A stretch of 59,525 nucleotides of DNA, filler included, from Basidiobolus meristosporus CBS 931.73 (GCA_002104905.1; 3 parts of 3 records of this genome joined end to end with filler, not necessarily neighbours in it); one strand, 5' to 3'; shown: positions 7,151 through 34,500, numbered from the whole stretch's first letter. The notes: generated from the sequence alone by a model not told the origin. Numbers and translations are program-made.

Positions 7151-9990
7151 CTGTTGTGTCTTCTACAGGCCAGAGAGAGGAGACCCAGATCAACCATCTT
7201 CAGATGTTTGTGATCTCATTATAGCCACCAATGACCAAAAAACAGAAAGTTACAAGATCCTGTTGCTCTGTAAAGTTCAAAAGTCCAGTCTAGGAGGGCT
7301 AGGTTACTACTAAAAAGTAGAGTTTCCATAGACAGAGGACCTGGACCATCAGCTTAAGCCAATCCAAATACATATATGATACACTTACAAAGTGTAAAAT
7401 CTAAGACTGTAAGCCAACTGCTACCCAAGTTAACACTATGAAAAATAATTGTATAGATCCCTTCAAAAGGCCATCACAGAACCTAAGCTCCATAATCATG
7501 AGATATTGATGCGGTGATGACAGTGTGCCAAAAGCGGTTAAAAGATGCACCCCAGATTTCACAAAAAACTTAATCAATCTTTGCATTATAGCACTAACAA
7601 GATGACTTTTGATTGGTTGCTGCTAATTTGCTCACTTTTTGATCCTGGAAACAAAGACACCTCCTATATTTGGGCACATTGCTTGGCTATTGCCTCTTTT
7701 CACACTACTTACTTCCTAACTCAAACAATGCTCTTACTTTTATGCATTTATATTGGCTTATTTCCATTCAATATGCAATTGTACCTCAATTACTAATTGT
7801 ACTAACCTATACAAGTCTCCATACCAAACACAAATATCAAGCCCAACCTCACACTCAATAAGCAGCTTTATTAATATCCACCATTCAATATGAATTCTGT
7901 TGCAACACCTTTTTTCCATGACTTTGGTGGGAGCCCTATAGCTTTATGCCATTGTTCATTCACCAGTTCTCATACAGCCTGGTCCTCAGCTGGCACTGTT
8001 AGATCTAGCATCTCAACTGCCAGTCTTTGCAATATTCAAGTGCATATTCTTGAGCACTGCTCTTGAGAAGTGCTGCACCCTTTGCTGTGCCTGTTGTTGA
8101 CCCAGAATCTCACTGTTGGCACTGCAATAGTTCTCTGAGTTCTTGACTCTGTTGCTTTGTCTGTAAGTGGAATCTCTACTCTGTCTGCCAGAGAGGACAT
8201 AGAGGCTGTGGTAGACATATTGCATTTCTCTGCAAATTCATCTACCGCACTGGAGTGTGGCTCAACTGGCTACACATTCAATTCTTGAGAAAGCAGGTGT
8301 TATCCTCTTGAGGCTTTATTCCATTGCTATTTTCTGGTTAGCATTGCTCCTGGTATCTAAGCAGTACTCTGATGTCAAGCCTCTCATCAGCCTGACTTAG
8401 CAATATTCAATTACATTTTTTAAATACAACTCTTGATGCAGTACACCAACCTCTTATAGTGTATATTTCAGCTCCTAAGTACCATTGTGTAGGTGAGTAG
8501 GCAGATACAGAGAATAGTCAAGCTAACAGTACTGGCATTACCCAACCAAATTGGGAATATTACTTTGAGCTGTGTGTTGGGCATGATTAGCTAGCCAATG
8601 GTGGATGGCCAGAAAGTACTGAAAACTACTGATCATAGATGTGCACATGATAGTACTTATGCTGTTGGCATCAAGAAGCTAGGCAGCCCTAATGTGTAGG
8701 TGATCAGATAGTAAGGCCAGGTAGGGCTAGATGCAACAAGCACTAACATTTATTAGGACAACTCTGCCAACATAGGTCAGATATTTCCTGGGTACAAGCC
8801 AACATCTACACTTTTTGGCATGAAACTCACATGAAACAAAACAGGATACCCCCTATAGGTGGGACTAGAATCCTGCCAGGAGAATCAATATATTGGCTAG
8901 GTGATGCAAAGTTCTATCTGGTATTTCAGGACATTTTTTAGTCAAAGCAGCAGCAAGCAGATATATGCTTGCAAGATGCCCAAAGATGAAATATTGACAA
9001 AAGGCCATCAGAATAACAACACATTACCGGCTAAATTCAAAGTTACTCAAAACTAACAACTCTTAAAATCTCAGGTACTATTTGATGGACATAATCAGAT
9101 TGGTTGAAACTATGTGTGGACTACCAGTTGTAGCAGTGGTTATGCTAATGAAGAGGTGAGTCTTCATAGTTGAAAATCTGGGTGGCATTGGCAAGATAGA
9201 AAAATCAAATGCCATTTGGTAAATTAGAGCAGCAATAATATAAAGGGCTAGCAGTAGGCTGCTACAGTTCTGTAGGGTTGAGATATATGATATGGGATGG
9301 AAATTCACCTTTTTATGCTAGCACCAAGTACAGCAATATCAGATGTAAAATCATATGGGTAGCTATAGAAAAAACTCAGCCAAGCTTACTATCCTGCTGA
9401 TAGCATAATAGCAGAGAAACTTACCAAATCACTTACTAGTGACAAGTTTTGCAATCTTAAACCAAAATTACAACTGGTCAGTATTGACACTTAATGGAGT
9501 GCAAGTACTCTGAGCATTGTATTGCCCCCATTTACTTACCAAACTTAGCCACAAAGATCATTGACCTTCAGTCAAAGTAAAGCTGGCCTAAATTTGCTAT
9601 TAGTCTATTTATTTGGTACACTTTACTAAAGTATCCAGTACCCAGAGCATGGGTTTTTCAAGGGTGGCCAAGCAGTAGCATACCTTGAACACATGCTCTT
9701 GGGACCTTTGAAATATACCTTTCATGCTTTTTTGTTGAGATCATCTGAAGAAAAATATTACTTTTACATTCAATATATCATCAAGTGAAAGCAGCACTGT
9801 CTACTTGGCTCCCAATTACCAAAATATCTCCATACACTTTTGGTAAAGTAGCTGGTCCTATAAGACACTTTCAGCCATAATGCTGTGGCATATTTTGATT
9901 GTATAGAAGTTATATTGCATTTATGAATAAGTTTGACAAGATATACAACTAGATCTTCAAAGTCACTACTTTGAAAGATTGACTGTTTCA

Positions 9991-10694
9991 GGCTCATAAC
10001 TATTGTAAAAGTTTTAGAGATAGCATAAGTGATTGGGAAACAAGCAGATTATGTGGTTAACATTGTGATTTGTTGAACAAAAAGTATATTTGTACTTGAC
10101 ATAGTTTTGGTAAAATATACACAAAGAATATCTTAAGGAAGGTCCCAAGAACATGCGCGCCTATTCTTTGCTCTTTGGACAGCTTTGCAAAACTCCATGA
10201 TCTAGGAACCTGATGTTTGGCCAAATGTCCCAAGAAAATCATGACAATGAATCTGGTCAGAGCTCTCCAGATTTGTAGGTAATAATCCAAGTTACAAAAT
10301 TGGGTGTATATTGTTGTAAGAGTTTAGGAGATATTGGAAATGATTGGGAGGACAAGTAGATTATGTGGTTTTCACTTAATGATTTAATGAATGTAAAAGT
10401 AGTATTTATACTTTTACCTGGTCTTGGCATTACAAACATGTGGAATAGGTTAAGGAAGGTCCCAAGAACATGCATGCAAAGTTTAGGGCTGTTTGGACAA
10501 CTATGAGAATTTTCATGTTCTGTGTACCTGGTATTTTGGTGAAAATATTCCAAGTAAATCCCAACAAGGAATTTTGGTTGGTATTCTCTAGGATCTGAAG
10601 GTGATGATCTAAGTGACTAAGTTAGGTGAATATTTAGGTTGAAATACAAATTTTTACAACATATATTTGGATGCAATCACAAATCTCTACAGTA
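9991..10694 (-). mobile_element. Old copia 5' LTR with primer-binding site, interrupted by a younger solo LTR
   Basis: 10001-10694 minus the nested insert is ~340 bp similar to the LTR family; on the minus strand it is followed by GTTATGAGCC (10000-9991), a copia-type PBS. Confidence 0.65.
10312..10661 (-). mobile_element. Solo LTR (350 bp) with 5-bp TSD TATAT
   Basis: TGTTGTAA...TTACAACA inverted ends; TATAT at 10307-10311 and 10662-10666; high similarity to LTRs at 15558 and 17918. Confidence 0.9.
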
Positions 10695-11720
10695 TTCCTA
10701 AACATGTTTGACATATCTAACTAGTCATGACCATGTAAAGTTTTATTACCATATTCATATTTAATAATATATCAAGCAAGCAATCTTTTGTTTGCTGACA
10801 CTTCCAATGACCCTCAATACTACCACAGCACTTGCAACTTTCTGTACTCACCTGCAGAAGCTCCTTCACTCAATGTATGTGCTGATGCAAACATAATAAG
10901 CTGCTAGCAGATCTACTAGAACCCACCACTTAGGGGTAAATGTGCTTTATTATTGAGCATCCATTACTTTAGTGAGCACCAAACAGCTTTATGCCCTTCC
11001 AAAATTACAAGTTACTTCTTTTTTGGTTCTGCTGTGAGCAGTCAAGTCCTAGCACCTTGCTAATTAATCTTTGCAACAGCTACAGGCAATAATATTGGGC
11101 ATTATCTATGATAGTGCTCTCAGACAAGAGTAGCAATATCCCATAGTACAAGCCCATATTCCAGAACCAGAGTGTAGGCACTTTGATGAGTGTTTCCCTG
11201 CTGCAAATATCTGTTTTGTTTACTAGTGTGATATCCAGCCTATCTACAACAGAGGGGCCAAAGGCTGTGTTAAAGAAGTACCATCATTTAAAAGCTCCTC
11301 AAGCCACTGAAGAATTGCTTGACTATCTCTTAGTTGATCTAGTGGCCAAATAGAAGTCTTTTACTGGCCTGTCTTTCCTGCAATTGTGAAGTTTAGGCTG
11401 GTCTGTATTAGCAATATCAGTTGCTACACACTGCAGCTTTGTCCTACAATTATGTGCTTCTGTCTTGGGTAGACTTTGTTTCCATTTACTCAACTTCACT
11501 ACTGTGAGGCCTATCACTGCTGCTGATACTCAGTGCCAAGGGCTGGATATGTCTAATACACATCATCCTACAGAGTACTGTTGCAACACTAATAAGTTAC
11601 AGATGTCCTCTGATGATGGAAAAAAGCCAGGAGAGACTTTACTCATTTTGCAGGCCAATCCCTTAACACTTGTGGAGATGAAAATAATCACAATACCAAT
11701 AGCTCCCTGCATCTCATATC

Positions 11721-12069
11721 TGTTGTAATTATTCAGTTGTCACCAAAATATTCATGCTAACTAAGTCACAGAGATCTTACTCTTTGATTAACATTCTGTC
11801 CTGACCATTTTTCTTGTCAGGATTTAATTAGAACATTTTCACCAAATTATCAGGTACCCAGATTATGAGCTTTCTCAAAATTGTCCCAAAGCCCCCAAAC
11901 TTTGCACACATATTCTTAGGACCTTCCTTAACAAGCTCTACACATTTGTTTGCTCTACTTTATCAAAAGTATAAATACCATACTTTTAAACAATAAATCT
12001 ACAAGTGAATAACATGTAAATCCTCTAGTTCTCCACATCACTTCCAATACTCCTCAGAATATTGCAACA
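11721..12069 (+). mobile_element. Solo LTR, related subfamily
   Basis: Starts TGTTGTAA, ends TTGCAACA, 349 bp; flanks ATATC/ATGTC (4/5 match); close to the copy at 34779. Confidence 0.8.
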
Positions 12070-13482
12070 ATGTCAATACTGAAAGTACACTCAAACTTCA
12101 AACCCTTGCTTGTAAAGTCACAGTATGAGTTGTTTTACTTGCCTCATGTTCAGTACTCCTTGTGGAGTTTTGACAGAATGTTCTTAGCTAAAAACTGTAT
12201 TTGACAATTGAACATCCAATCTACCTATCAAAATCACCCCTTAGCTGTGCAGCCCAATGCACTCTATTTACAAGTTGAGTTAGTTAGTACTGTTAATAGA
12301 CAGCACCAGTGGAGCTTGTATGTACCATTTGACAAGTCTGTCTGGCTGTTGTGTTGTTTCCTTCATGCATGCAAATGCGGAATTCTCCTAGCATTATTGC
12401 TCTGTACAGTAGTTCATGGTGTCCATTGGTGTGGAGTACAAGTTTATCACCATATTCTTTTGTGGACTAGTGGGCTATATTACAATGTACTTCCGATTCA
12501 TTCCTAAAAGCTCTGCCGCGGATCAATGGTTGGCAAAACTATGGAAGTAAGGTTGCTGAGCAATGAATTCAGAATTTTTTCGTACATTGATTTTTCGTAC
12601 TCAGGGTTGCATGATAAGCTATCATTCCCATTTTAGGACTATTGATTACCATGTTGCGTACAATTACCGGCACGCTGAGTGGATTGAACAGCTTGTTCAG
12701 GGCAATCTTATACACGAGGTGGACTGCCGCATGTGCACCCATAGCAGTGGAGATTCTAAACAACACATCAATGCATGTTTTCTTCTCATTCCTAAGTCTC
12801 TGTTCCCATTACGGTTGCTCACAAACAGCTTATGAGACATTATGCTTGGGGAGATTGTGTGGCTGGTATAAACGAGAACTTGCTGGTATGTTTCGAGCAT
12901 CCATGTACCTGAGACAACTTCGGCGATGTAAGGGTCCAGGAGGACAAATGTTGAGAATTCATGTACTTTTCGTGGTCTCTCTGCAACCCCCGGCCAAATA
13001 GTTTGAAGTCAGGAATTGACTCCATAACGGATAGGTTAGAAATCACAAGTAATTGGGACTATACCAAAGGCTGCTTACATCAGGTTAGTTGGCAGGCTAT
13101 TAGTGCACGGCTGTTTGTGCGTGCATCCGCAGTTATATCGCATAATATGCTTTGGCCAAAGCTTAGAATATTCATCCTGATAAGACAAATTTAGTTAATC
13201 TACTGTACGTGTGGTGGCAGGCGTACGCTTAGCCAAATCTGGTTGTATCATCAATAACAACACCTGGATCCAGTGATTTGGAAATTTCGTTGGGCGCCTT
13301 CTTTTGTTGTGATTTCCCATTTCCAAGGCATTGCCTCAATATTAGACTATACCAGCTGCTGCTTTGGCACTTCCGTCAACACTGATCAGCCTTTCAGCTG
13401 CGGACGTTGACTTTAAATTCCTGCACCATCCGTTGGTGAAGGTTATTTATTATATCATTGCTCATTTGGACCGACTGATCCA

Positions 13483-18735: not shown

Positions 18736-19200
18736 GGAAGACAGAAGGGAAAAGTGGTTGTATGCTAACTGCGGTGTTTACCTCCAAAATACACTACTTG
18801 ATCTGACTGAAACCCAAGCTAGCCATCGATTACATACAAATTTGAAATAAGTATTCTCAGCAACACACGGGCTGCAGAAGCTAACGATTGAGAATGGCGA
18901 AGTAGTAGCAAAGTTTAAAGGGAAGCCAGCTATGCGTAGGAATATAGACTCACCTCTGGAGACTTCGCCTGCTTGTGAAGCCTTGACAGCCATTGTGTTT
19001 GAACCTAAAGCTAGCACATCCCAAGTTGGTTTGGGCGAGTGAATAAACATCCTGTTGCAGAAGGAACGGCGTTGTGTTTTTTAGAATTCACAAAGTGTTA
19101 TAAAGGTGCGTGCCCAGCGAAGTATATCTAATTCGTGAACTCACCACAACATAATGATCGCTTTAGCTGCGACTTGTGGAGTTGTATACTGGTTACATAC

Positions 19201-19288
19201 TTAGTAGCGCACTAGAGGATTGTGCTGAAGTTGACATGCAGGCTAGTAGTACCATGACCAAGGAGCAGAAAACGGTACTGAATCGCAT
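19201..19288 (-). pseudogene. Orphan exon 1 (signal peptide) of family B
   Basis: Encodes MRFSTVFCSLVMVLLACMSTSAQSSSALL followed by a GTATGT donor, nearly identical to exon 1 of the gene at 21430-21856; homology ends ~35 nt into the intron and no matching exon 2 follows. Confidence 0.7.
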
Positions 19289-20202
19289 TGTGTGTGCTTC
19301 TGTGTGTGTGCTTTTGTGTGTATGCCTGATGAATAAGGTGAACATTACAAGCGATTTTATAGGGAATTAGCCCGGCTTGTAAGGAAAAACAGGCTGAGCT
19401 ACCATGCTGCTGAAGCGGAATAACTTATATTATATACCATAGTATTGTATTCACTCCGAATATAAGCACTGGTGAGCGCAATCTAGGCGTAAATAAAGTG
19501 TCGTAGTTTCTGTTACACTGAGGCTATTAGTCCTAAGTGCATGCATAGTTTGTTCGAGGTATAAGGATGGAGGATAATATTGGGCGGTTACATAAGTATT
19601 GCCCATGTGTTCATCTCTTGGTGGTAGTGAAAGAACACGATTAACAGTATGTGATTGTGAAAGAACACGATAACCAGCATGTGATTGATAACGTAAAAGA
19701 TACACGAGAGGCATCCTTTGGTTGAGCTGCTAATCTAATATATCATGCTGTCAAGCTTGCTATTAATACTGCCATCATCCAAGTTATGCAAGATAAAGGC
19801 CAATTTTTGAGGCTCTCTTTTGAGGCTCTCGCTGCATTTCTACACATTCCCGTTTACTAGAGAAATACTTGCCACTTTCAGATAACATAGTATAGGGATC
19901 TCTCTACCACGGTTAGCATTGTTGTTGACAGAAACCACGTGTTTGTACTTATATCAATTATATATATAAGAATCTCTCTGCTATGGCTAGTTTAGTCGCT
20001 TATTGCTGTGGAAGACAGAAGTAAAAATGGTTGTATGCTAGCTGCGGCGCTTGCCTCCGAAATATGCTACATTATTCGACTGAAACCCATCAATTTTGTG
20101 AAGCTTCCTAGATACGATGTTTGTTAACCTTCATCTTGGCCGAAAACTGGTTTTGTATATAAATGCTGGTGCTGAGCATTTTTTGAGTATTCAACATTCA
20201 CA

Positions 20203-20635
20203 ATGCACAAACAACTTTCCGCAGCTTGTGCTCTATTAATGGTCGTCAGTGCCTTTGGAAGTCCCGTGGATGTGTCAAGCACAAATCTCCGATAGGAACC
20301 CACAAAGCGGCCAAGTGGTGAAGAAGTTCTCGTCCAACAAGGAGGAGGATGCGCAGAATATTCGACACTATATCGATGGCATTCTTGGCCAGATGTCAAG
20401 AAATGCGTTCGATCAGACCCTCTCGGATAAGCAAGAAGCCGACCAAGGAGTCGAGGAAGAGGAGGGCAATCCTGAAGAGGCCCAGCTATGGGGGAGATAC
20501 GGCGGATATGGGCGGCGGAGGGGAAGATACTGGGGACGAGGAGGTTACGGTCGCTACGGTGGTTATGGAGGTCGGTGGGGATATGGACGCTACGGGGGAT
20601 ATGGAGGGTACGGTGGATGCGACTGGGGTTGCTGA
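20203..20635 (+). pseudogene. Family A copy A1, frameshifted
   Basis: ATG 20203; lacks 17 nt (GTAGCGAGCGCGTCCAT) present in A2, giving TAG at 20293-20295; the downstream pro-region and G/R/Y tail are intact in another frame. Confidence 0.85.
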
Positions 20636-20772
20636 GTAAACTCCTTAATAACAAGGATCAAGGCTTTCATTCACTCCAACAACACAGCTTGTCTGTGTGC
20701 TTGAATAAAGTACCGTTGCATTTTATCTATCGGTAGTGAATGGCCATGTGATTATGACTCTTATTAAGAATG

Positions 20773-21053
20773 CTAGCTGGCAGAAACTCTCACTGCTCCA
20801 ACGGTCACTTCTTTTCCGTACTTCGCGATTTGTATCTCGAGTTGTTTGGAGGTAATCGTAGCAATCCTGTTCCTTTTCCTGTTACAATCATGCAGAGAAG
20901 GGTACAGGATCGCTTTGGCGAAGGTGCTGGGCGGTCCGGAAGTGATGCTTGCGGTAACTACCGGTTCGCAGATCACGTGTTGGCATGAGCCGAGGTTGAT
21001 ATGTGGGTTAGCAGTGCCACGGTTAAGGAGCACAGAACGGATTTGAATTGCAT
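20773..21053 (-). pseudogene. Family B pseudogene 1
   Basis: Signal-peptide codons fused out of frame to exon-2 sequence (GSCQHV...ILYPSLHDC...VGAVRVSAS*) by a 146-bp deletion relative to the intact gene. Confidence 0.8.
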
Positions 21054-21429
21054 TGTGTGTGTTTCACCGCTGAATTGAATATTGAAGAGGATTGTATAAA
21101 GCTATAAGGAGATAAGCACGGTTGGCAAGGAAAGACAGGCAGAGTTACCATAACAATGAAGGGGAATATTTGATTATTGGAAGAATCACCCTTACTTTAG
21201 TTTCTAGCCAAGAGAGCCGGTGCCTTGCTATTAGTATCACAAAGACGTTGCGGTTGCTACGGAGGATACACTCCATTCACCTTTTGCTGGATAATCATAA
21301 TGATATGTAGGCATATTCTAGGCTTTCGTTCACTAGTCTGTTACAGTTGCTCTTTCATTCTGGCTGTGTATATCTAATGGGATGCATTCTTTGTAACTCC
21401 TGACTGAACAATGCGGTTTATTGAGGATG

Positions 21430-21856
21430 CTAGCTGACAGATACTCTTACTGCTCCAACAGTCACTTCTTTTCCGTTCTTCGCGATGTGTACCTCGAGTT
21501 GATTGGATGTTATAGCAGCAATCCTGTTCCTGCGATTGTTACAATCTTGCAGAGAAGGATACAAGATGGCTTGGGCAGAGGCACTGGGTGATTCGGGGGT
21601 GATGCTGGCAGTATCCACCGGTCCAAAGGTCACGCGTTGGCATGAGCCAGCTGAGAATGGTAGTTGTTGTGCAGTATCTTCAGGAGTATTCACCAATTCT
21701 ACATTGTAAGTATTTGGTTAGTAAGGCTCACTGGTTGCGGCTAGTTGAGTTATATACTGATTACATACTTAGTAACGCACTAGAGGATTGTGCTGAAGTT
21801 GTTGTGCAGGCTAGTAGTGCCATGGTCAAGGAGCAGAAAACGGTACTGAATCGCAT
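21430..21856 (-). CDS. Family B: 118-aa small secreted protein, 2 exons (possible betagamma-crystallin-like fold)
   Basis: Exon 1 21856-21769, intron 21768-21699 (GTATGT...TACTAAC...TAG, 70 nt), exon 2 21698-21430: MRFSTVFCSLTMALLACTTTSAQSSSALLKLVNTPEDTAQQLPFSAGSCQRVTFGPVDTASITPESPSASAQAILYPSLQDCNNRRNRIAAITSNQLEVHIAKNGKEVTVGAVRVSVS; TATAAAA upstream on the minus strand. Confidence 0.85.
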
Positions 21857-22450
21857 TGTGTGTGCCTCGGTGTGTGTGCTTCTGTGTGTACGTCTGATGA
21901 ACAAGGTGAGCATTGTAAGCGATTTTATAGGAAATTAGCCCGGCTTGTAAGGAGAGACAGGCTGAGCCACCATGATGAAGCGGAATATTCTGTACTAATG
22001 TATTCACTCCGAGATTTCCAAATTCGCTTTGGGCTAAGCACTTTTTTTTTAGAGAAACTATCGAACTCAAGCAATGCTCCTTGTATTGTTCGATTACACT
22101 GGGATGACTAGTGTTGGCTTGCATATGTGGCACGGATGCGTTGCCTGCTCACTTCCATTAGTATCGTAACACCGATTATGGTGAGTGCGATCTAGGCGTA
22201 AATAAAGCGTTGTAGTTTCTGTTACACTTCAGCTTTAAATTTTGTGTGCATGCTTAGTATTGAGTGCTACACATAGGTGTTACCCACTCGTAGCCCACTC
22301 ATTCATCTCCTTGTGAAGGAATCAGATGGTGGTGATGACTTCTGGTGAAGAACGGCAAATGGTGGTGGTCAAAGAAAAAGATGACCAGTATGGGATTGAT
22401 AACGTAAAAGATACACAAGAGTAGGCTCCGTTTATCCTTTGGTGCTCACC

Positions 22451-22633
22451 ATGCGTAAGTACTTTTCCATCGTTCTAATACTTTTTAATGTGACAAGTGT
22501 GTCCATCTCTTCTCCAAAGCCGGGAAACGGTGTGTAGGAAGAAGGCGCTCGCACCAGAGAGGGCAAGTGGCGAGGTCGTTATGGTCACTTCGGGGACTAT
22601 GATGGTCGCTGGGAACTTGGAGGGTTTACTTGA
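22451..22633 (+). pseudogene. Degenerate short family A paralog
   Basis: One frame reads MRKYFSIVLILFNVTSVSISSPKPGNGV*EEGARTREGKWRGRYGHFGDYDGRWELGGFT*: signal-like start, GV(E)EEG spacer and RGRYG..G.Y.GRW tail similar to family A. Confidence 0.55.
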
Positions 22634-23001
22634 GCTGCTAATTTAATACATCATGCTGTTAAGCTTACTACTAATATTGCGATCATCCACAACTCTAAAT
22701 CATGCAAAATAAATGACAATTTTTGAGGCTCTCTTTTGAGGCTCTCGCTGTTTATCTACCCATTTCCGTTTACGAGATAAATACTTGCCATTTTCATATA
22801 ACATAGTATAGAAATCTCTATACCACGACTAGTGTTGTTGTTAACAGAAATCGAGTGTTTGTACTTTGGCTGCGGTGGTTGCCTCCGAAATATACTACAT
22901 CATTTGACTGAAGCTTCCTAGATGCGATATCAATCAACCTCCATCTTGTATCTGTATATAAAGACTGGTGCTGAGCTTTATTTGAGTATTCAACATTCAC
23001 A

Positions 23002-23451
23002 ATGTACAAACAACTTGCCGCAGCTTGTGCTCTACTAATGGTCGTCAGTGCCTTTGGAAGTCCCGTAGATGTGTCAAGCACAAATGTAGCGAGCGCGTCC
23101 ATCTCCGATAGGGATCCACAAAGTGGCCAAGTGGCGAAGAGGTTCTCGTCCAACAAGGAAGAGGATGCGCAGAATATTCGACACTACATCGATGGCATTC
23201 TCGGCCAGATGTCAAGAAATACGTTCGATCAGACCCTCTCGGATAAGCAAGACGCCGACCAAGATGTCGAGGAAGAGGAGGGCAATCCAGAAGAGGCCCA
23301 GCTATGGGGGAGATACGGTGGATATGGGCGGCGGAGGGGCAGATACTGGGGACGAGGACGCTACGGTCGCTACGGTGGTTATGGAGGTCGATGGGGATAT
23401 GGGCGCTACGGGGGATATGGAGGGTATGGTGGATGCGACTGGGGTTGCTGA
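23002..23451 (+). CDS. Family A copy A2: secreted prepro-peptide with Gly/Arg/Tyr/Trp tail ending CDWGC (149 aa)
   Basis: Intact ORF; hydrophobic signal MYKQLAAACALLMVVSAFG; acidic spacer DQDVEEEEGNPEEA; 50-aa tail with 21 G, 10 R, 10 Y, 4 W, 2 C; TATATAAA ~45 nt upstream and AATAAA downstream. Confidence 0.92.
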   Translation: MYKQLAAACALLMVVSAFGSPVDVSSTNVASASISDRDPQSGQVAKRFSSNKEEDAQNIRHYIDGILGQMSRNTFDQTLSDKQDADQDVEEEEGNPEEAQLWGRYGGYGRRRGRYWGRGRYGRYGGYGGRWGYGRYGGYGGYGGCDWGC

Positions 23452-23576
23452 ATAATAAGAATCAAGGCTTTTATTCACTCCAATAACACAGCTTGTCTGT
23501 GTGCTTGAATAAAGTATCGTTGCATTTTATCTATTGATAGTGAATGGGCATGTGATTGTGACTCTTATTGAGAATG

Positions 23577-23834
23577 CTAGTTAGCAGAGACTCTCACTGC
23601 TCCAACGGTCACTTCTTTTCCGTTGCTTCGAGGTAGTCGCAGTAAACCTGAACCTTTTCCTGTTGCAATCTTGCAAGGAAAGGTACAGGATTGCTTTGCC
23701 GGAGGTGCTGGGTGGTCCGGAAGTGATGCTTGCGGTATCTGCCGGTCCGCAGGTCACGTGCCGGCAAGAGCTGATATCGATATTCGGGTTAGCAGTACCA
23801 CGGTTAAGGAGCAGAGAACGTTATTGAATCGCAT
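23577..23834 (-). pseudogene. Family B pseudogene 2
   Basis: Same deletion junction as 20773-21053 plus a second internal deletion. Confidence 0.75.
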
Positions 23835-25367
23835 TGTGTGTGTTTCACCGTTGAATTGAATACTGAAGAGGATTGTATAGAGCTATAAGGGGATAGGGAC
23901 GGTAGGCAAGGAGAGATAGGCAGAGTTACCATGGCAATGAAGGGGAGTATCACCCTTACTTCGGTTTCTAGCCAAGAGAGCCCGTTCCTTGCTACTAAAA
24001 TCACGTGAAGTATGGGCACTACAATAGTATAGTATGAGCGACTTGTTATAGTGTGAGTGATTTGAGTTTCTATTTGCTGTAAGAGTAAAACCGGATTGAA
24101 TGCATGCATATATATTTGTAGAGTGAAATAACTCACTGGCTCTTGTGGAAATCTATACAAAACACGAATCTTTATAGCCTTTCCACTACTGATAGTGGTG
24201 GTGAAAGACACGTCCAGTTGATGTGTAGATAAGGTGAAAGGCTTTACCAACTTAGGTATTTATCCCAAGTGAAATGTAAGTATCGGTGCTTAGTGAAAGG
24301 TTCCACGAGGTCGGGGTTCTCGAAGACTCTTCTAAAGACGTGGGGACGAAACCGGGGAGATACACGATGAGGGACGGGGATTACGTCCTATTGAACCTCC
24401 ATCACTCCCTACCACGGTAGTCCCTCACCGGCTTCCATACGGGGATTCTGATTCAACCTCTCGTCTGCCCCACAGCACGGATAAGATCTTATGACCATCT
24501 GAGCTTTGTGGAGAGTATCTTTTGAGCGTTTGTTCGATAACCATGATGGCTATGATAGATAAATAAACTTACTTTGGCGCCTGATGGTAAGATGGAGCAT
24601 CTATCACATCAAGCTAGCAGCATTCCACTTGCCAAGTTATTACCTACTGATACTTACATAGACGATCATAAGGTTCATTGTAGTCATACTCAAAATATTA
24701 TTATCTCTTCAGTATTCTCAACAGCAGTGCAGTGGCCTCAGCACTTGCTGTTATGAACAGTTTCCTTCACAGGTATGGCTAAAGTCTCAATATACTGGGA
24801 CATTGGCATGCTTTGTACGGTGCTCCAGCTGTCTTTCAGAGAGGCCCGTACTGTTTAGCTGATTACAGCACACTAGCATATATAAGCTATGTCATTATTT
24901 CTTGTTACTAATTTCCTTCTGCAGAAAGCCAAATACCAACACATGACTTGCTTTGTACTCCCACTGCAGGTAGCTAGCAGATATACAATTGTACTGCATA
25001 GGACTCTACTTCATATAGTAATTTGGTGTTATTTTGAACAATGATAAGCAAGAGTAGGAACTCTCCATTGCTCTAAAGCTACTGGTAAACATAAGCTCAG
25101 TAAACTTGTTCTAGGCAGCATTCCAACTCATATTTTCGCAATAAATAACCTTGCAGCATATAGAATGGTGCTGATAGCTCCTTGATCCATACTGTTGGCT
25201 CTTGGAGTTAGCCTGCAGTAGGGATTTTAAACCTACATCGACTCCTTAGTGAGCACTTCTTTATGTAATTGATGATTGATAATTACTTACAGGCTGCCCA
25301 GGTACAATAGGCCTCTGCTTTCCTCATTTAAGTATCACCAGAACCCTTGGTTGACTGGACACTTCTG

Positions 25368-25502
25368 AACCGGTATTGCACTGTCAGCTTCAGGTACCAT
25401 ATCAAGTACCCTCAACCGGTATTGCACTGTCAGCTTCAGGTACCATATCAAGTACCCTCAACCGGTATTGCACTGTCAGCTTCAGGTACCATATCAAGTA
25501 CC
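25368..25502 (+). repeat. 46-bp tandem repeat, ~3 copies
   Basis: AACCGGTATTGCACTGTCAGCTTCAGGTACCATATCAAGTACCCTC repeated head to tail without spacers. Confidence 0.9.
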
Positions 25503-25934
25503 AAACATTCTTCACAATGCTTTAATATTTGAAATATTTACAACAGGCACCATATAACTAAGAATGACAAAGTAGTAGTCCGAATACTTGTGGCAGTTAT
25601 CAGTACTTGAGCCGCAATCCCTGCCAATATCACCTACGATGAACTTACTTACAAGCAAGCCATATGCACAGTGAGATAAGTACGGAAGTATACTAATTTT
25701 ATACTATCGCAGCCTAACTTTAAGCTTATTTATTCCTCGCTCGGCTGACCTATACTTGAGGATGTACTGCGGCAGGTTGACTGTATGCGTAGCCGACCAG
25801 GAATACATGGATGTAGCTAGATAGGTTCAAGATATGTGATAAATGTTTTAATCAACCATGCCACTCTTTAATGAATATGAGTTGTGGCAGCAACGGAAGG
25901 GGATACGGTGATAGGACGCATGGAGATGGCGAAT

Positions 25935-26114
25935 GCCAACCAAGGAGTCGAGGAAGAGGAGGGCAATCGTGAAGAGGCCCAGCTATATGGGAGATACGGC
26001 GGGTATGGGTGGTGGAGGGGCAGATACTGGGGACGAGGACGCTACGGTCGCTACGGTGGTTATGGAGGTCGGTAGGGATATAGAGGCTATGGTGGATGCG
26101 ACTGGGGTTGCTGA
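25935..26114 (+). pseudogene. Family A copy A3, 5'-truncated with nonsense codon
   Basis: Starts at the acidic spacer; TGG to TAG at 26073-26075; tail shortened but still ends GGCDWGC*. Confidence 0.85.
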
Positions 26115-26242
26115 ATAATAAGAGTCAAGGCTTTCATTCACTCCAGCAACGAATAAAGTACTGTCGCATTTTATCTACCGATAGTGAATGGCCATATGTA
26201 TAATTCGATGGGATGTATTCTTTATAACTCTTATTGTGAATA

Positions 26243-26477
26243 CTGGTTGGCTGAGACACCTGCTTCTTTTCCGTTATTTGGAGGTAGTCGCAACAATCCT
26301 GTTCCTTTTCCTGTTGCAATCTTACAGAGAAGGGTACAGGATTACTTTAGCGGAGGTGCTGGATGGTCCGGAAGTGATGCTTGCGGTATCTACCGGTCAC
26401 ATGCTAGCATGAGCCGAGGTTGATACGCGGGTTAGCAGTGCCACGGTTAAGGAGCAGAGAACGGTATTGAATCGCAC
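26243..26477 (-). pseudogene. Family B pseudogene 3
   Basis: Same deletion junction; start codon changed to GTG. Confidence 0.75.
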
Positions 26478-27856
26478 TGTGTGTGTTTTACCGTTAAATC
26501 GAATATTAAATACGATTGTATAGAGCTATAAGGGGATAAGCACTGTTGGCAAGGAGAGACAGGCAGAGAAGGGGAATATTCTATTAGAGTACTTTTTTCA
26601 GTCTTGGGAGTACGCATATGATTACTTCAGTTTCTAGCCAAGAGAGCCCGTTCCTTGCTACTAGTAACATAGAAAGACTTCAAAACGTCATAGTTGCTAT
26701 AAGTGCAAAACCTGATTGAATGCATGCATATGTTCGTAGAGTGAAATAACTCATTGAAATCTCTATAGTCTTACCGTTAGGCATATGACTGATAGTGGTG
26801 CTGACAGATGATACCCAGTTGATGCCCCGTTGATGCGTAGATAAGCCTTTCATACGAGGATTCTGGTTCAAAATCGTCTGCCTCAAACACGGATTTTGAC
26901 CAAGACAAGATCTTGTGACCATCTGAGCTTTGTGGAGTGTATCTTTTGAGCGTTTGCTTATTAACCATGACGGCTATGGTAGATCAATACACTCATGCTG
27001 GAGTATCTATCACATCAAGCTACTAGTCAAGTTATTACTTACACTCTGATCACTGACTGACACTTAAACCATCATATCTCTGGTGTATAGAAGATCATAA
27101 GGTTTGTCGTAGTCATTTTCACAGAACCATTATCTCCTCAGTATTTTCAGCAGAAATACTCTGACCTCAGCACTCATTGCTATGATCAATGGTTGTCATT
27201 TAGTAATAATGATTGCAGCTAGTTCTCAGTGCTTGAACCGCAACCCCTTCCAATATCAGCTAGCATGAACTTACAACAAGCTATATGCAGTGAGAATATA
27301 TTCGATAAGTACACTAATTTTTATATTATCGCAGCCTAACTTGGAGCTTACTAATTCCGCTTACCATACACCGGCCAAGTATATACTTCAGGATTTACTG
27401 CGGCAGGTTAACTGTATGTGTAACCGACTGGGAATAAATGCTGGAGTTGGCTCAAGAGATGTCATTAATCATGCCATTCTTTAGTAAATATGTTGATATA
27501 AAGGGAGTTATGGCATCAACGGAAGGGGATAACGACGCTACAGTGACAGGATACATTGGTACATGGAGATGGCTGCAACTGGAAGTTCACACAATCAATA
27601 TCAACATATGGTTAATATGGATGTTGCTAACCTGCAACATATCTGCTAAACAAATGATCTTGTGAAGCTTTTCGTTGTGGTATGCGTGTTTGATTGAATG
27701 AAGAGCCACTAAACAGTTTCTATTGAACGATCGTATGGATCACCCGCAGCGCTTCTCACTGAAGGCAGAGGTAAAGTTGAGTGTCTTTAATAAGCTCCAT
27801 CATCAGCTTCTGCTATACGGGTATATATACTCATAATCAGCTCATTCAGATTCACA

Positions 27857-28276
27857 ATGTACAAGCACTTCTCCATCCCCTTTGCTCTCCTAATTGCCTC
27901 ATATGCAGTGGCAACTCCTGTGCAGCCAGAAGTAACCAATGTAGCAAGTGCTTCCATCTCCATCCGGGACCCACAAAGCGGCAAAATGATAACACAATTC
28001 CAATCCGCAAAAGACGAAGATGCTCGCGCCATTCTTGACGACATATTCGGCCAAATGTCAGGCGGTGGGTTGGCAGATGAATAAGTGTCTCCTACAAGTC
28101 AAGACACTGACTCTGAAGAGACCCAGCTTTTGGGTAGATATGGTGGCTATGGAAGGTGGGGAAGCAGATACGGGGGACGAGGACGTTACGGTCGCTATGG
28201 TGGCTACGGAGGCCGATGGGGATATGGGCGCTACGGGGGATATGGTGGCTATGGTGGATGCGACTGGGGTTGCTAA
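27857..28276 (+). pseudogene. Family A divergent copy A4 with one in-frame stop
   Basis: 27857-28084 and 28085-28276 are the same frame separated by TAA (28082-28084); signal peptide, DTDSEETQ spacer and tail ending CDWGC otherwise intact. Confidence 0.8.
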
Positions 28277-28751
28277 TGCACTACATCCTTACGTTTAATA
28301 AACATCATAATGACAATGCTCATCGTAATTAATCAGTGATGTTTACCAAGCTGCAGCATGGAGAGAAAGTCGGATATGTGTATGGATAAGGTGGATGTCT
28401 AGGCAAAGATAAGTCTTATTGCAGTTTGGCTGTCAATTATCTTCATAAATGGTGCCAATCTTTACCTTTAAATGCGGTCAATTTTTACCTTCAATGCTGT
28501 CAATTTTTACCTTTTAATGGTGTACTGTTAGTAGTCATTTTTTTTCGCATGATAACACTACTCTAGAAGCTCTTATTGTATCTTCCTAATGCCTGTAGAA
28601 TAGATGCAAAATATAATATATCGTTCGTCCGAAACCCATCAATTTCGCGAAGCTTCCTAGATGTGATGTCTATAAACCTCCGTCTTGGCCAAAAGCTGTC
28701 CCTGTATATAAAGGCTGGTGCCGAGCTTTATTGGAGTATTCAACATTCACA

Positions 28752-29201
28752 ATGTACAAACAACTTACCGCAGCCTGTGCTCTACTAATGGTCGTTAGTG
28801 CCTTTGGAAGTCCCGTAGATGTGTCAAGCACAAATGTAGCGAGCGCATCCATCTCCGATAAGAACCCGCAAAGCGGTCAAATGGTGAAGAAGTTCTCGTC
28901 CAACAGGGAAGAGGATGCGGAGAATATTCGACACTACATCGATGGCATTCTCGGCCAGATGTCGAGGAATACGTTTGATCAGACTATCTCGAGCAAGCAA
29001 GGCGCCGACCAAGGAGTCCAGGAAGAGGAAGGTAATCCTGAAGAGGCCCAGCTATGGGGGAGATACGGTGGATATGGGCGGCGGAGGGGCAGATACTGGG
29101 GACGAGGAGGTTACGGTCGCTACGGTGGTTATGGAGGTCGGTGGGGATATGGACGCTACGGGGGATATGGAGGGTATGGTGGATGCGACTGGGGTTGCTA
29201 A
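28752..29201 (+). CDS. Family A copy A5: secreted prepro-peptide (149 aa)
   Basis: Intact ORF from ATG 28752 (the track's 28731 start is a TTG), colinear with A2; TATATAAA upstream. Confidence 0.92.
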   Translation: MYKQLTAACALLMVVSAFGSPVDVSSTNVASASISDKNPQSGQMVKKFSSNREEDAENIRHYIDGILGQMSRNTFDQTISSKQGADQGVQEEEGNPEEAQLWGRYGGYGRRRGRYWGRGGYGRYGGYGGRWGYGRYGGYGGYGGCDWGC

Positions 29202-29326
29202 ATAATAACAATCAAGGTTTTCATTCACTCCAACAACACAGCTTGTCTGTGTGCTTGAATAAAGTACCGTTGCATTTTATCTATCGGTAGTGAATGGCCA
29301 TGTGATTGTGACTCTTAGTGAGAATG

Positions 29327-29584
29327 CTAGTTAGCAGAGACTCTCACTGCTCCAACGGTCACTTCTTTTCCGTAGTTTCGAGGTAATCGCAGCAAACCTG
29401 AACCTTTTCCTATTGCAATCTTGCAGAGAAAGGTACAGGATTGCTTTGGCGGAGGTGCCGGGTGGTCCGGGAGTTACGCTTACGGTATCCAATGGCCCGG
29501 CAGTCACGTGCTGCCATGAGCCAAGGTTGATACGCAGGTTGGCAGTACCATGTTTAAGGAGGAGGGAACGGTATTGAGTCGTAT
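29327..29584 (-). pseudogene. Family B pseudogene 4
   Basis: Same deletion junction; start codon changed to ATA; additional stops. Confidence 0.75.
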
Positions 29585-31036
29585 TGTGAGTACTTCACCG
29601 TTGAATCGAATATTAAAGAAGATTGTGTAGAGCCATAAGGGCATAAGCAGAGTTACTAAGATAATGAAGGGGAATAATATACAACTTTATCGTGTGTGTG
29701 GCTTGGATTTCGATACGTAAACAAATGGCATAGTTGCTTTGATTGAATGCATGCATATAATCGTAGAGTGAAATAACTCATTGAAATCTCTATAGTCTTA
29801 CCGTTAGGCATATGACTGATAGTGGTGCTGAAAGATGATACCCCGTTGATGCCCCGTTGATGCCCCGTTGATGCGTAGATAAGCCTTTCATACGAGGATT
29901 CTGGTTCAAAATCGTCTGCCTCAAAACACGGATTTTGACCAGGACAAGATCTTGTGACCATCTGAGCTTTGTGGAGTGTATCTTTTGCGCGTTTGTTTAA
30001 TAATCATGACGGCTATGGTAGATAAATACACTCATGATGAAGTATTTATCACATCAAGCTACTAGTCAAGTTATTACTTACACTCTGATCACTGACTGAC
30101 ACTTACACCATCATATCTCTGGTGTGTAGAAGATCATAAGGTTTCAAAGGTATATGTTTTCTACAATATTTGAACACGCTTGCTACAACTCATTGGAGAT
30201 ATTCACAAATGAGACTATACAACTAAAAATGATCACTTGATGCAATAAATGGACGTTGTTTGATAAGAATCCTTCAATACTTGAACCAGCCTATACGAAT
30301 ATCAAACAAACTATATGCACTACAAGGGAATATATTACATAAGTACAGAAGTACAATAATCTTTATATTTCGTATACCACCATTCAGATGCGCTATACAC
30401 TGACTCCATATATACTTCAGGGCGTGCTGTGGCATGAGTAACCGGCTAGGAATAAATACTGGAGTTGGATGTAACTAGATAGGTTTATCAAGCTCCATCA
30501 TTATTCCATTCCTGAAGACACCGACTCTGATGGCAGCAACGGAAGGAGATTAGGACGCTACGTTTCTGGGTAATTCACCACATCCTTACCTTAAATAAAC
30601 ATCACATTGTCAATGTTTCATGCTAAACTTCATACTAAGCCTCATCGTAATTGATAGAAGCCACTCGGTGATGTTTGCATAATTCATCAAGCAGCAGTTT
30701 TCATAGTTCCTCAAGCTGCAGTAGGGAGAACAAGTCAGATAGGTGTATGGACAAGGCTGTGGTAGTGGATGTGTAGGTGGGTATCAACAGTTTGGCAGTC
30801 AATTGAAGTGGTTCTTTTTCGCAGCATTTTTACCGGCCACGTTAGTGGAAACACACATACTTACTTCATCAGTATGCTTGTCCTTATCTTACTAACAACA
30901 GTATACTAGAGCTAGCACAAAGCTTCCTAATGCTTGTAACATAGATTCGATCGAAACCCATCAATTCTGCGAAGTGTCCTAGATGCAATGTCTATTAGCC
31001 TGGTTTAGTATATAAATCGAGTGTTCAACATTCACA

Positions 31037-31240
31037 ATGTACAAGCAACTTACCGCAGCTTGTGCTCTACTAACGGTCGCCAGTGCCTTTGGAAGTCCCG
31101 TGGATGCGTCAAGCACAAATCTCCGATAGAAACCCACAAAGCGGCCTAGTGGTGAAGAAGTTCTTGTCCAACAGGGAAGAGTATGCGCAGAATATTCGAC
31201 ACTACATCGATGGTATTCTCAGCCAGATGTCAAGGAATAC
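31037..31240 (+). pseudogene. Family A copy A6, frameshifted and 3'-truncated
   Basis: ATG 31037; same 17-nt deletion as A1 (ACAAATCTCCGATAG); homology ends at 31240, before the spacer and tail. Confidence 0.85.
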
Positions 31241-31599
31241 TCTTATAAAATAACTGGCCTATGCACATGAAAAGATTTTTGCTACTTGGAGTGCAATATA
31301 ACTCGATAGTATGCGTGGCTTGGGCCTCTAAACGTAATTTAATGCCGTAGTGATTCTTTCTTCTTATCTGAATGTATGCATGCAGAGTTTGATCGAGGAA
31401 TATGAGTAAAGAGTAACAATGAGCTGGAACGAATTGTTCTTTCTACTTTTGACAAAATCACACGCCAACTCTTATAGCCGTATGAAGCAACCTTCAATTA
31501 GGCACTTTATCTGTTTTCTTATGCTACTCTGTATAGATTACTATGGATAGCTTACTATGGATAGCATATATATAAACTTTATTCTTTGGTATTGCACAT

Positions 31600-34500
31600 C
31601 CACAATATGGTCAAGTGGGCAAGGAGCTTTTATCCTTCATATTTGTATATGTTGTTCTTATTATGTAGATTATTGTTACCATCTTTGGAGTGTATCTATG
31701 CATGGTTGATCAATAGTTTTGATGGTCAGAGTATACAAGCGTTGTAGTTGTGCATAATGCCTCAATTTTTTTGCTCCATCATATTAATCTGTTGCTACTG
31801 TGCTAGCCGTCAACTTGCTGATACTCTTAGCCATCAATCAGCAACTCTTGTTCAAATCAGTCATGTCTACTGATGCATTGGGGCTCCAGATTATATTAAA
31901 AGAATTTGCCCCTTTAAAGACTTAGGTACCATGGAATCATCTAGTTCCACTTTCAAAACTTTGCACAGGTAGTGTGCTACATGAATATAGATTAATGCTT
32001 CTTTTAAAGCAGTGAAGGTATTGATTGGTCCTTCCCCAAAGTCACTGATGTTGAAAAGACCAGAGTATTTCTGCTCTTCCTCTATGGCCAGTGAAGGCAG
32101 TATAGGTGCTGCTTGTGTTACATGAGTTCCAACTTGCTTGTACCTGTCAATTTTGCTTGTTTTAAAGCCTCCTATATACTTGTGTTATTTTGCAGCCCTC
32201 TGAGTTGTCAGAGCTGATAAATGTTGAATAAAACACTTGAGTGAGTACTTGTTCCACCATGAGCAATCTGAAACTTGCAACTCTGCTGATAATGTGTTGG
32301 TATTTGACTTTTATTCCAAGGGTATTTATCTGGCACTCAACTGGTGCTTTCCTTCTTATTTCTATACAGTGATATTCATGCAAGTTTTGTGCAACTTATT
32401 GGCAAATTGATATGTCTGTTGTTTGGTCTAGCCTCCTGTTAGTGTCTATTCCTCTTGTCTGCTCAATAGCTAGGGCCAGAGATATTGATATTTATTAGCT
32501 CCATTAAGCACTGAGTTCAGTAAGCATTACAATGGCATTTTGCTCATCTTTCACTACTTTCTACTGAGCATTAGTTAGCTACTAGAGAAAGCTCAAAGAA
32601 CTAAATTCAAAAGGGCAAAGGGACTCTATGCTAGCTGACTGTTAAACAAAGGGTTACCAAGCCTGTGTGTAGAGACAACTATGATTCCCATTCAGCTGCT
32701 AAGCTGTGAATTTGGCATATACAGACTGTCTCTAAATCAATGTAATTATAACTATGAAGCATACATAAGTCACTCTGAGTGGTGGAAATATACATGTTGT
32801 CACAGTGCTCAGATAATAGGTTGCACACCAACTTAATCAGTGTATGCATGGCAGCCACAATGTAATTGTAGCTAAGCATTTCTTAGTAAAATCCTGCAAG
32901 GTGATGCTATTTCTGGTGATCACTAGTACTAGATCAGCTGTTGTTGTATCCCTAAACCTGCACAAGTCCCCAAAATCAGTTTCCTTAATTATCTAATCTG
33001 CTTGTCCTTTAGAAATGCCCAAAAGGCATTACACTAATCTGAAGCAGTGCTACACTGCAATGCTATGAATGAGTAGGTGATGTATATCTGATCTGCCTTA
33101 CTATTGCTGCAATGGATGCTACTATGATGCACCCTTGTAAATTTAACCTCATTGAAGGTCTCAAAGTTGGAATAAATCTGATTTTCTGCTAGTTCTCAGT
33201 TGATATTCTGATGGGATTTGAAGGTATTCAGCTGGTCTTTGTTCTTTAAGTTGTTGGTTGCAATTTTTGTTGGAAGTAGTAAGCAGCTGTTAACCAAACC
33301 TGGTATGAATGCCAGTTGGCCTATCCTCCTCATACAGAATATATCTGCTAGTCATCCCAACAGGTAGTGGCTGATATATAAAAAGGTGTATATATAGAAA
33401 ACTTGAATTGAGCCAACATCATGGTGGTATTTTGCTGACCATTTCCAAGTCCTTTCTGTTTGGGAAGAGTGCTATGGTGCATATGTTGGGGACACAGGAG
33501 TTGCAACTGATATTACTAATTCTAATATTTCTGAGCTTCACATATTTGCAATCTACTTTACTGCAAGTAGGTTGTAAACCTAGTATGATACATACTAGGC
33601 CACTTTACCATATTCAACAAACTAGTTCCAGCTAGGGACAATAGGTCTGTATTTGTAGGCAAATATTGGAACACATGTGTAGAGAAGCAGTGGGCCTTAT
33701 ACGTGTGCTGATGCATGGCAAACTGGCAATGCAGTACATGAGCTCTACTTTTGAGTTGCATAGCCTCAATTGTTGCCTTGGACAAAGCCAATGCAACTAC
33801 ATATTTTTATAGCTACTTCCTCAGAATTACAAATGTCACTTGCTTCATCTCTTATTGAATCCTTGATACTGATTCTTTGGTTTACATTATGTTCAGGTGA
33901 CTAATTTAGGAGCCAAGAGCTTCTTAGGCACTTCAATGCAGTTATATAACTCTTTATGCTGTGCATACTCAAGTGACATATTTTTTTGTGGTACTCTCAG
34001 CTATAATTTATTGGTTGGCTGTCATGTCATTGTTAATACTATAATATCAATGATACTGATGAGTTAGTCAGCAATTATGATCACTAAAGCTATATGCTTC
34101 ATATTGAGCAGTGAGTTACCATGAATGAGACAAAAGTGAGCTCAAAAATGGTGTCCAGGCACACATTGATCACATCTAAATATGGCTACAGCCTAAAGCT
34201 GGTGTGGAGCAATACTGCAATTTACTTAAGCCCTCACCAGTTGAATCTACAGTGGCCTGGAAATAAGTAATCATTACATACTGCACTGATGATGAGTGTA
34301 CTCAGTTTTGATAGCTCAGTAGTGGTAGATATGCTTAGTGGTAAATATCTTGATGAATGAAATATGTATACTCAGCCAAAGCCAATGCAATAACAGACTC
34401 TGCAGATCTTTAAATACTTAAGATACAAAATCCACAACATTGTTGTATCAGATAGCTTGAGCTACTTACAAGCTTACATAGCTCATCAGAATGCAACATA

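Follow-up and report, generated by a model that had tools for sequence, protein, structure and literature searches.

The window analyzed in this study is a stretch of 59,525 nucleotides (nt; three records joined end to end with filler) from Basidiobolus meristosporus CBS 931.73 (GCA_002104905.1), and within it lies a tandem array of genes encoding small, predicted secreted proteins that terminate in a cationic tail rich in glycine, arginine, tyrosine, and tryptophan. Positions 18736-48384 constitute one entire scaffold of 29,649 bp from this fungus (Fungi, Basidiobolomycota), in agreement with an original prediction, made from the sequence alone, that had pointed to an early-diverging fungus. 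The same prediction placed six gene copies (A1 to A6) in the array and described them as a mixture of intact, nonsense, frameshifted, and truncated forms. Comparison of the A2 coding sequence with the window DNA by blastn returned exactly those six places (Table 1), with nucleotide identities of 83-92% across 180-450 nt that far exceed chance. The open reading frame (ORF) listing together with DNA alignment revealed every kind of copy that had been named: two genes of 149 amino acids (aa) are intact (A2 and A5), and the other four are broken or truncated.

A2, for which an identical protein is on record (P0014), represents an intact copy. Its predicted signal peptide contains Lys3, a hydrophobic core of 15 residues, and small residues at positions -3 and -1 (A-F-G, followed by S); the maximum 10-residue Kyte-Doolittle mean is 2.76, and residues 5-15 are helical in the AlphaFold2 model. 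The conserved N-domain and acidic spacer come next and close with the invariant junction EEAQ, which is immediately followed by LWGR. The tail of 49 aa is composed of 21 Gly, 10 Arg, 10 Tyr, 4 Trp, and 2 Cys (43% Gly, 20% Arg, 20% Tyr, and 8% Trp) and, as originally described, carries three GRYGGYG units and a terminal CxxxC motif (CDWGC); the A5 tail differs from it by one residue. In the AlphaFold2 model (mean predicted local distance difference test score, pLDDT, 46.5), residues 52-80 form a helix predicted at low confidence, and the tail is disordered.

The broken copies are damaged in different ways. The deletion of 17 bp in A1 causes a frameshift just past the signal peptide, by which the signal-peptide frame is lost, and the residual ORF corresponds to a public model (P0017, 121 aa). 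A6 has the same deletion and is truncated at its 3' side. Only the last ~180 nt are retained in A3, which has an 18-bp in-frame deletion, an in-frame TAG, and no signal peptide; equivalents of this fragment on three other scaffolds were modeled as 62-aa proteins (P0038 and P0048). A4 represents a divergent subtype of 139 aa (S), whereas A1, A2, A5, and A6 are of the 149-aa subtype (L). A4 is 97.6% identical to an intact S gene, and the public model P0005 skips its stop codon via a 21-nt intron (cf. P0003), which is implausible and not credible. Substitutions at two otherwise invariant tail positions of A4 are as expected for a dead copy. A5 (public protein P0013) begins 476 nt after A4, and this S-plus-L pair was seen again on other scaffolds.

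Table 1. Positions of the gene copies and other features. Positions are those of the window unless a scaffold is named; for A1, A2, A3, and A6 the blastn match to A2 covers the same span as the feature.
Feature	Positions	Strand	Basis and remarks
Block array of repeats with gene copies	18736-32400		Direct-repeat families D1-D18 and megablast
A1, L type	20203-20635	+	17-bp deletion at coding nt 83-99; blastn, ORFs, DNA alignment
A1 residual ORF	20270-20635		121 aa, without signal peptide
231-nt element, family D1	20761-20991		Further copies at 21418, 23542, 26193, 29292
A2, intact L-type gene	23002-23451	+	149 aa; identical protein on record
A2 predicted signal peptide	23002-23058	+	Codons 1-19; read from the sequence
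A2 conserved N-domain and acidic spacer	23059-23301	+	Codons 20-100; net charge -11
A2 cationic tail	23302-23448	+	Codons 101-149; net charge +9, predicted disordered
A3, 5'-truncated fragment	25935-26114	+	Spacer end and tail; blastn, ORFs, alignment
A4, divergent S-type copy	27857-28276	+	In-frame TAA at 28082-28084; blastn match 28115-28274 (tail)
A5, intact L-type gene	28752-29201	+	149 aa; blastn match 28752-29199
A6, L type	31037-31240	+	Same 17-bp deletion as A1; 3' truncated after about codon 74
AT-rich, ORF-poor stretch	32400-38400		About 6 kb, 36-39% GC
ORF ahead of truncated rRNA gene	38460-38849	+	About 150 bp ahead of the large-subunit fragment; 9 Cys
Edge of ribosomal DNA array	39000-48384		Right end of the scaffold
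Large-subunit rRNA fragment	39000-41744		Begins at model position 665
5S rRNA gene	42579-42697		Within the ribosomal DNA spacer, opposite strand
Intergenic-spacer sub-repeats	43498-44176		About 367 bp each; families D13 and D20, 71-76% identity
Small-subunit rRNA gene, full	45465-47271
5.8S rRNA gene	47439-47592
Large-subunit rRNA gene, beginning	47853-48384
L005 paralogue array	6924-12246		Scaffold MCFE01000402
L006 paralogue array	681-3666		Scaffold MCFE01001163

The window copies are members of a considerably larger family. In exact look-ups, the L cluster comprised at least 28 distinct sequences (149 aa, plus partial models) and the S cluster 11 (139 aa), distributed over at least 12 scaffolds, and the close relatives of the window copies are all annotated as "hypothetical protein K493DRAFT_..." of CBS 931.73. 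A profile was built from 24 L and S members and searched against 1.84 billion representative proteins, which produced 14 matches at E<=1e-3, 10 of them from Basidiobolus. The other four, namely one insect "suex-1-like" protein and three unnamed metagenome/Logan proteins, align mostly with the tail and have only GGYG composition in common with it. A second, superfamily-level search recovered Basidiobolus proteins only. As judged by these profile searches, credible relatives are restricted to Basidiobolus. No relatives were found in Pfam, NCBIfam, PDB sequences, or a scan of JGI metagenome contigs, and a tail-only protein search recovered family members alone. With nothing but "hypothetical protein" names on record and no Pfam, NCBIfam, or PDB match, the family is, on this sequence evidence, undescribed, just as no family had been recognized at the outset. 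In a second sample labeled as the same species, a 4,280-nt contig carries a homologous gene together with its flank; these are only 80-93% alike, and the tail variants differ, so that the family is not confined to one isolate. Feature matches in the ESM Atlas (an oomycete glycine-rich protein, sonorensin bacteriocins, apidaecin, and a miracidial antigen) all scored <=0.83, which is the range of shuffled sequences, and were treated as noise. One protein of the same L subtype as A2, P0024, carries the automatic UniRef name "RSAM-associated Gly-rich repeat protein"; no such NCBIfam model matched five subfamily representatives including A2 (hmmscan, E<=1), and the name most probably arose from composition alone.

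Alignment of the 24 L and S proteins demonstrated a constant order of elements: signal peptide, conserved N-domain of ~55 aa, variable acidic spacer, junction, and tail. A hydrophobic N-terminus with small -3/-1 residues, predicted to be a signal peptide, extends across the aligned proteins. The conserved N block reads TNVASASIS-RDPQSG ... F-S-K-EDA ... D-I-GQMS, and most positions of the 49-residue tail are invariant. The net charge of the front half is -7 to -12 and that of the tail +7 to +9, and a similar balance was found across subfamilies (front -7 to -16 vs tail +7 to +15 in five of six representatives). The proposed layout of signal peptide (predicted from the sequence), acidic spacer, and cationic tail is real, charge-balanced, and, as described below, subject to purifying selection. 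The junction EEA(E/Q)LWGR is present in all tail-bearing subfamilies and is the best-conserved element of the whole superfamily.

Two further tandem arrays were identified in B. meristosporus, L005 (at least five copies) and L006 (three copies). Their proteins of 188-249 aa have a signal peptide, an A-S-[IV]-S-[DN] motif, an acidic spacer, the junction [DN]PEEAELWGR, and tails of the form (WGRGR)n with a net charge of +13 to +15. An extra His/Lys-rich insert of variable length (HHKK repeats) occurs in the L005 type. Several L005/L006 copies are frameshifted within the tail, some are fused or truncated in public models, and faint "Phosphodiest" Pfam labels are attached to the L005/L006 models. 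P0051 and P0053 have other Arg/Tyr/Trp/Gly tails after an identical junction, and no second P0051 copy was found within its 12.5-kb locus. L005, L006, P0051, and P0053 are distant paralogues, in which the signal peptide, A-S-[IV]-S, acidic spacer, and exact junction are retained.

Three homologues from B. ranarum (115-119 aa) have the front elements of the family, from the signal peptide through the N-domain to the acidic spacer, but a genuine stop codon closes the frame immediately ahead of where the junction would lie. A hidden tail exon was ruled out for two B. ranarum contigs by a six-frame composition scan, which detected no Gly/Arg/Tyr/Trp-rich frame anywhere in them. Because these homologues are complete without a tail, the N-domain appears to have a role of its own. 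In one B. ranarum locus (L007 6361-6425), the frame runs ~20 codons past the stop, with Gly, Tyr, and two Cys (...GNYGHNCYESSNSGC...), and this segment may be a decayed or never-expanded tail remnant. B. ranarum P0052 is named "RxLR effector protein", yet its sequence has no RxLR motif and the name looks wrong.

Selection was evaluated by comparing the L and S subtypes with the Nei-Gojobori method for the ratio of nonsynonymous to synonymous substitution rates (dN/dS, or omega). The tails yielded a dN/dS of 0.05-0.12 at dS 0.5-0.7, and in one L/S pair 13 of the 17 tail changes are synonymous, vs 24.5% expected (P about 1e-5). The front halves yielded a dN/dS of 0.1-0.2 with dS saturated at >2, and omega within L copies was 0.14-0.36. 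The tail is therefore near-identical between L and S despite front halves that are saturated at silent sites. These substitution patterns indicate purifying selection on the front half and on the tail alike, the tail being almost frozen. Since dN/dS is far below 1 at substantial dS, the genes can be regarded as real and under selection, and we consider a real, selected gene family of secreted type highly probable. Gene conversion is also at work, as shown by the lower dS of the tail and by an S gene (L002 3148-3567) that bears an L-type tail; conversion by itself is unable to reduce dN/dS.

The coexistence of intact and damaged copies had been ascribed to birth-and-death evolution, a reading that the scaffolds do not support as stated. 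The repeat array reaches the left scaffold edge and stops at ~32.4 kb; by megablast, the region from 18.7 to 32.4 kb recurs in the arrays of scaffolds MCFE01000777, 138, and 343, but that from 33 to 48 kb does not. A 231-nt D1 element, located ~80-125 nt downstream of L-type copies, is a component of the repeat unit. Scaffolds 777, 138, and 343 repeat the order of copies (L carrying the 17-bp deletion, then an intact L, the 3' fragment, S, and L), and both the 17-bp deletion and the 5'-truncated fragment occupy equivalent block positions on at least four scaffolds. Lesions that recur in this manner were copied with the block and are not independent deaths. The genes sit in ~10-kb higher-order blocks (L-broken, L, fragment, S, L...) that were copied to numerous genomic locations and are homogenized by gene conversion, and block duplication with conversion should take the place of birth and death. 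A transposon origin of the ~2.8-kb unit was rejected: the six intergenic/flanking window ORFs scanned contain no transposon domains, and the unit belongs to the larger scaffold-shared block.

Of the 14 L copies sampled, 7 carry the 17-bp deletion. A monophyletic pseudogene lineage was ruled out, in that deletion copies are nearest to intact ones at distances of 1.4-2.2% (1.4% for A1 and 1.7% for L002_5805, each relative to a different intact copy); the absence of monophyly indicates mosaic conversion or recurrence. The deletion places a +1-frame ATG in frame, which creates the 121-aa leaderless ORF beginning MCQAQISD, found in A1 and in equivalent copies on L001-L003. Omega among the deletion copies was 0.12-0.5, similar to that of intact copies, with one outlier of 0.99 that is based on only five differences. 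The leaderless form may be either a used isoform or a pseudogene refreshed by conversion. Tail length varies by in-frame changes of -18, -9, and -30 bp.

What such proteins do can be approached through comparison with known systems. Many animal antimicrobial peptide (AMP) precursor families combine a conserved prepro region with a variable cationic C-terminal peptide. Defensin, cathelicidin, and preprodermaseptin precursors share with the Basidiobolus proteins a signal peptide, a charge-balancing acidic region, a C-terminal cationic peptide, and a conserved front with a variable end; they differ in that the Basidiobolus boundary, EEA(E/Q)LWGR, contains no known convertase site and there is no homology. 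The NLP-29/CNC peptides of Caenorhabditis elegans are likewise small and secreted, with GGYG-type Gly/Tyr(/Arg/Trp) repeats, and are encoded in clustered AMP genes that arose by local duplication and are induced by infection (PMC2453101). Nematode precursors, however, have no long conserved acidic N-domain, the Basidiobolus tail is frozen, and the organisms are an animal and a fungus; no named nematode protein appeared in the 24-member profile search, and the likeness in composition, predicted secretion signal, and tandem clustering is a resemblance in kind only. Peptides of Arg/Trp repeats are antimicrobial and antifungal in vitro (PMC3509626, PMC8140080), and the (WGRGR)n tails of L005/L006, with their high positive charge, are a natural counterpart; the (RW)n peptides are synthetic, short, and amidated, whereas the Basidiobolus tails are Gly-interspersed and those in the window are Tyr/Gly- rather than Trp-rich.

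The pairing of acidic and cationic halves, the conserved front with variable Arg/aromatic/Gly tails, and the invariant junction fit the precursor of a charge-masked cationic effector. By analogy with the above systems, our preferred reading is a charge-masked AMP precursor, to which we assign a probability of roughly 40%. The acidic half would neutralize the cationic tail while the protein is being secreted; in the extracellular space, a non-Kex2 protease acting at the conserved junction would free or unmask the tail, which would then contact anionic microbial envelopes via its arginine and aromatic residues. The product would be a gene-encoded linear AMP directed against competitors in gut, dung, and litter, with high copy number serving dosage, and the bacteria-rich habitat of Basidiobolus can be counted as fitting. 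Several findings weigh against this proposal. No conserved dibasic (KR/RR) site lies ahead of the tail in any aligned subfamily (A2 has KR at residues 46-47, but A5 reads KK there and the S type lacks it), which makes cleavage conjectural. Homologues in B. ranarum are complete with no tail at all; the signal-peptide frame is missing from half of the L copies sampled, although these look no less constrained than the others; and the seven sequencing runs that matched A2/A5 were all DNA-type contig sets, with no RNA run among them. Database, profile, and tail-only searches found no characterized AMP with recognizable sequence similarity. Moreover, the nematode NLP-29 cluster (~12 kb) is diversifying under positive selection (PMC2453101), unlike the conserved and homogenized Basidiobolus tail, which in this respect is more like a dosage-selected, e.g., structural, product.

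That last property fits the main alternative, possible though not favored, in which the proteins are adhesive, coacervating, or wall-building; as far as sequence features are concerned, a Gly/Arg/Tyr adhesive or coacervate suits them about as well as the AMP precursor. Phase separation and wet adhesion would arise from Arg/Tyr/Trp "stickers" set apart by Gly "spacers", possibly once Tyr had been oxidized and Cys cross-linked, while the acidic half would hold the protein soluble until its deposition at the sticky capilliconidial beak or spore wall, and many identical copies would supply a bulk product. The predicted disorder of the tail and the invariant, homogenized, high-copy genes agree with this. 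So does a tail composition near that of mussel Mfp-3, a 5-7 kDa protein with 25-29% Gly, 26% cationic residues, >20% Dopa, and 30-35 gene variants (PMC5132118), and in a tick cement glycine-rich protein, Gly-spaced Arg and aromatics drive phase separation and adhesive ageing (PMC11794139). Capilliconidia of Basidiobolaceae have an adhesive-tipped beak of undefined composition (PMC13370150). The two animal proteins are comparable as disordered, secreted, ~5-7 kDa products rich in Gly/Arg/Tyr/Trp with many gene variants, but neither is homologous, neither has an acidic N-domain, and the Basidiobolus tail closes with CxxxC; with Mfp-3, the likeness (small, Gly-rich, cationic, Tyr-rich, many variants) is a resemblance in kind only. 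Structural glycine-rich proteins, furthermore, usually vary in repeat number, whereas the 49-aa tail is near-fixed apart from its few in-frame variants, and the paralogous (WGRGR)n tails have no Tyr for cross-linking. A match to a characterized cell-wall glycine-rich family, named in the original prediction as a finding that would speak against it, was looked for: in plant glycine-rich proteins (GRP, PF07172), a Gly-rich, Tyr-containing repeat region similarly comes after a signal peptide, but they are longer, variable in repeat number, and have no acidic half to balance their charge; no PF07172 match at E<=1 was returned by hmmscan for A2, A5, or the N-part of A4, and the Atlas feature score was only 0.51-0.64.

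It is less probable that the N-domain is the functional secreted protein and that no precursor exists, the cationic tail being a lineage-specific low-complexity anchor to anionic walls, mucus, or nucleic acids. The N-domain is conserved in all subfamilies under purifying selection, and the tail-less B. ranarum proteins point in the same direction; these, however, are only three annotated proteins from a fragmented assembly, the tail is conserved more strongly than the N-domain, and the most conserved element of the superfamily is the junction. Least probable of all, and very unlikely in our estimation, is a functionless ORF carried by satellite-like or segmentally duplicated DNA, or else the precursor of a ribosomally synthesized and post-translationally modified peptide (RiPP). 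The copies do lie in repeated DNA at scaffold ends, many of them are broken, and their likeness could be maintained by gene conversion, but the low dN/dS at substantial dS is not accounted for by conversion, and the scanned window ORFs are free of transposon domains. As for a RiPP, fungal Kex2-processed repeat proteins and dikaritins contain KR-delimited core repeats, whereas the Basidiobolus proteins have none and bear one tail each. Modifying-enzyme domains, including UstYa/DUF3328 or tyrosinase neighbors, were absent from six window ORFs and from the L001-L003 gene lists, which had no Pfam matches, although intron-containing genes could be missed by this search.

The remainder of the scaffold is of a different nature. 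Between the gene array and the ribosomal DNA (rDNA) lies an AT-rich, ORF-poor stretch that is absent from the other arrays examined. The ORF just ahead of the truncated large-subunit gene, when read from an internal Met (MKIASILVSLLTVVNA...), has a signal-peptide-like start followed by nine cysteines and matches no Pfam family; its product may be a small secreted cysteine-rich protein. The right end of the scaffold is occupied by rDNA, the leftmost unit of which is truncated, and it therefore looks like a junction of rDNA with unique sequence.

The known gene-encoded fungal AMPs have cysteine-stabilized folds (defensin-like and the AFP/PAF group), and we are not aware of any fungal family that is linear, glycine-rich, and cationic and comes with an acidic carrier. 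The family reported here is a genus-restricted variant within the class of secreted glycine-rich cationic proteins. We tentatively suggest, as a possibility well short of even odds, that Basidiobolus produces gene-encoded effector peptides that are linear, disordered, and of Gly/Arg/aromatic composition (GGYG and WGRGR types), a family with no known fungal precedent; they would be released from the conserved acidic carrier by non-dibasic cleavage between EEA(E/Q) and LWGR and would either kill competing gut microbes or act as Mfp-3-like spore glue. Release at this position, if true, would represent an undescribed propeptide-processing specificity, and a junction that is invariant yet not dibasic may be a sign of a new processing protease. 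Basidiobolus inhabits reptile and amphibian guts with dense bacteria, spreads through adhesive conidia, and occasionally causes disease in humans and animals. For such an organism, a secreted family of at least 40 copies with a frozen 49-residue tail is a concrete candidate for a role in competition or as a spore glue.

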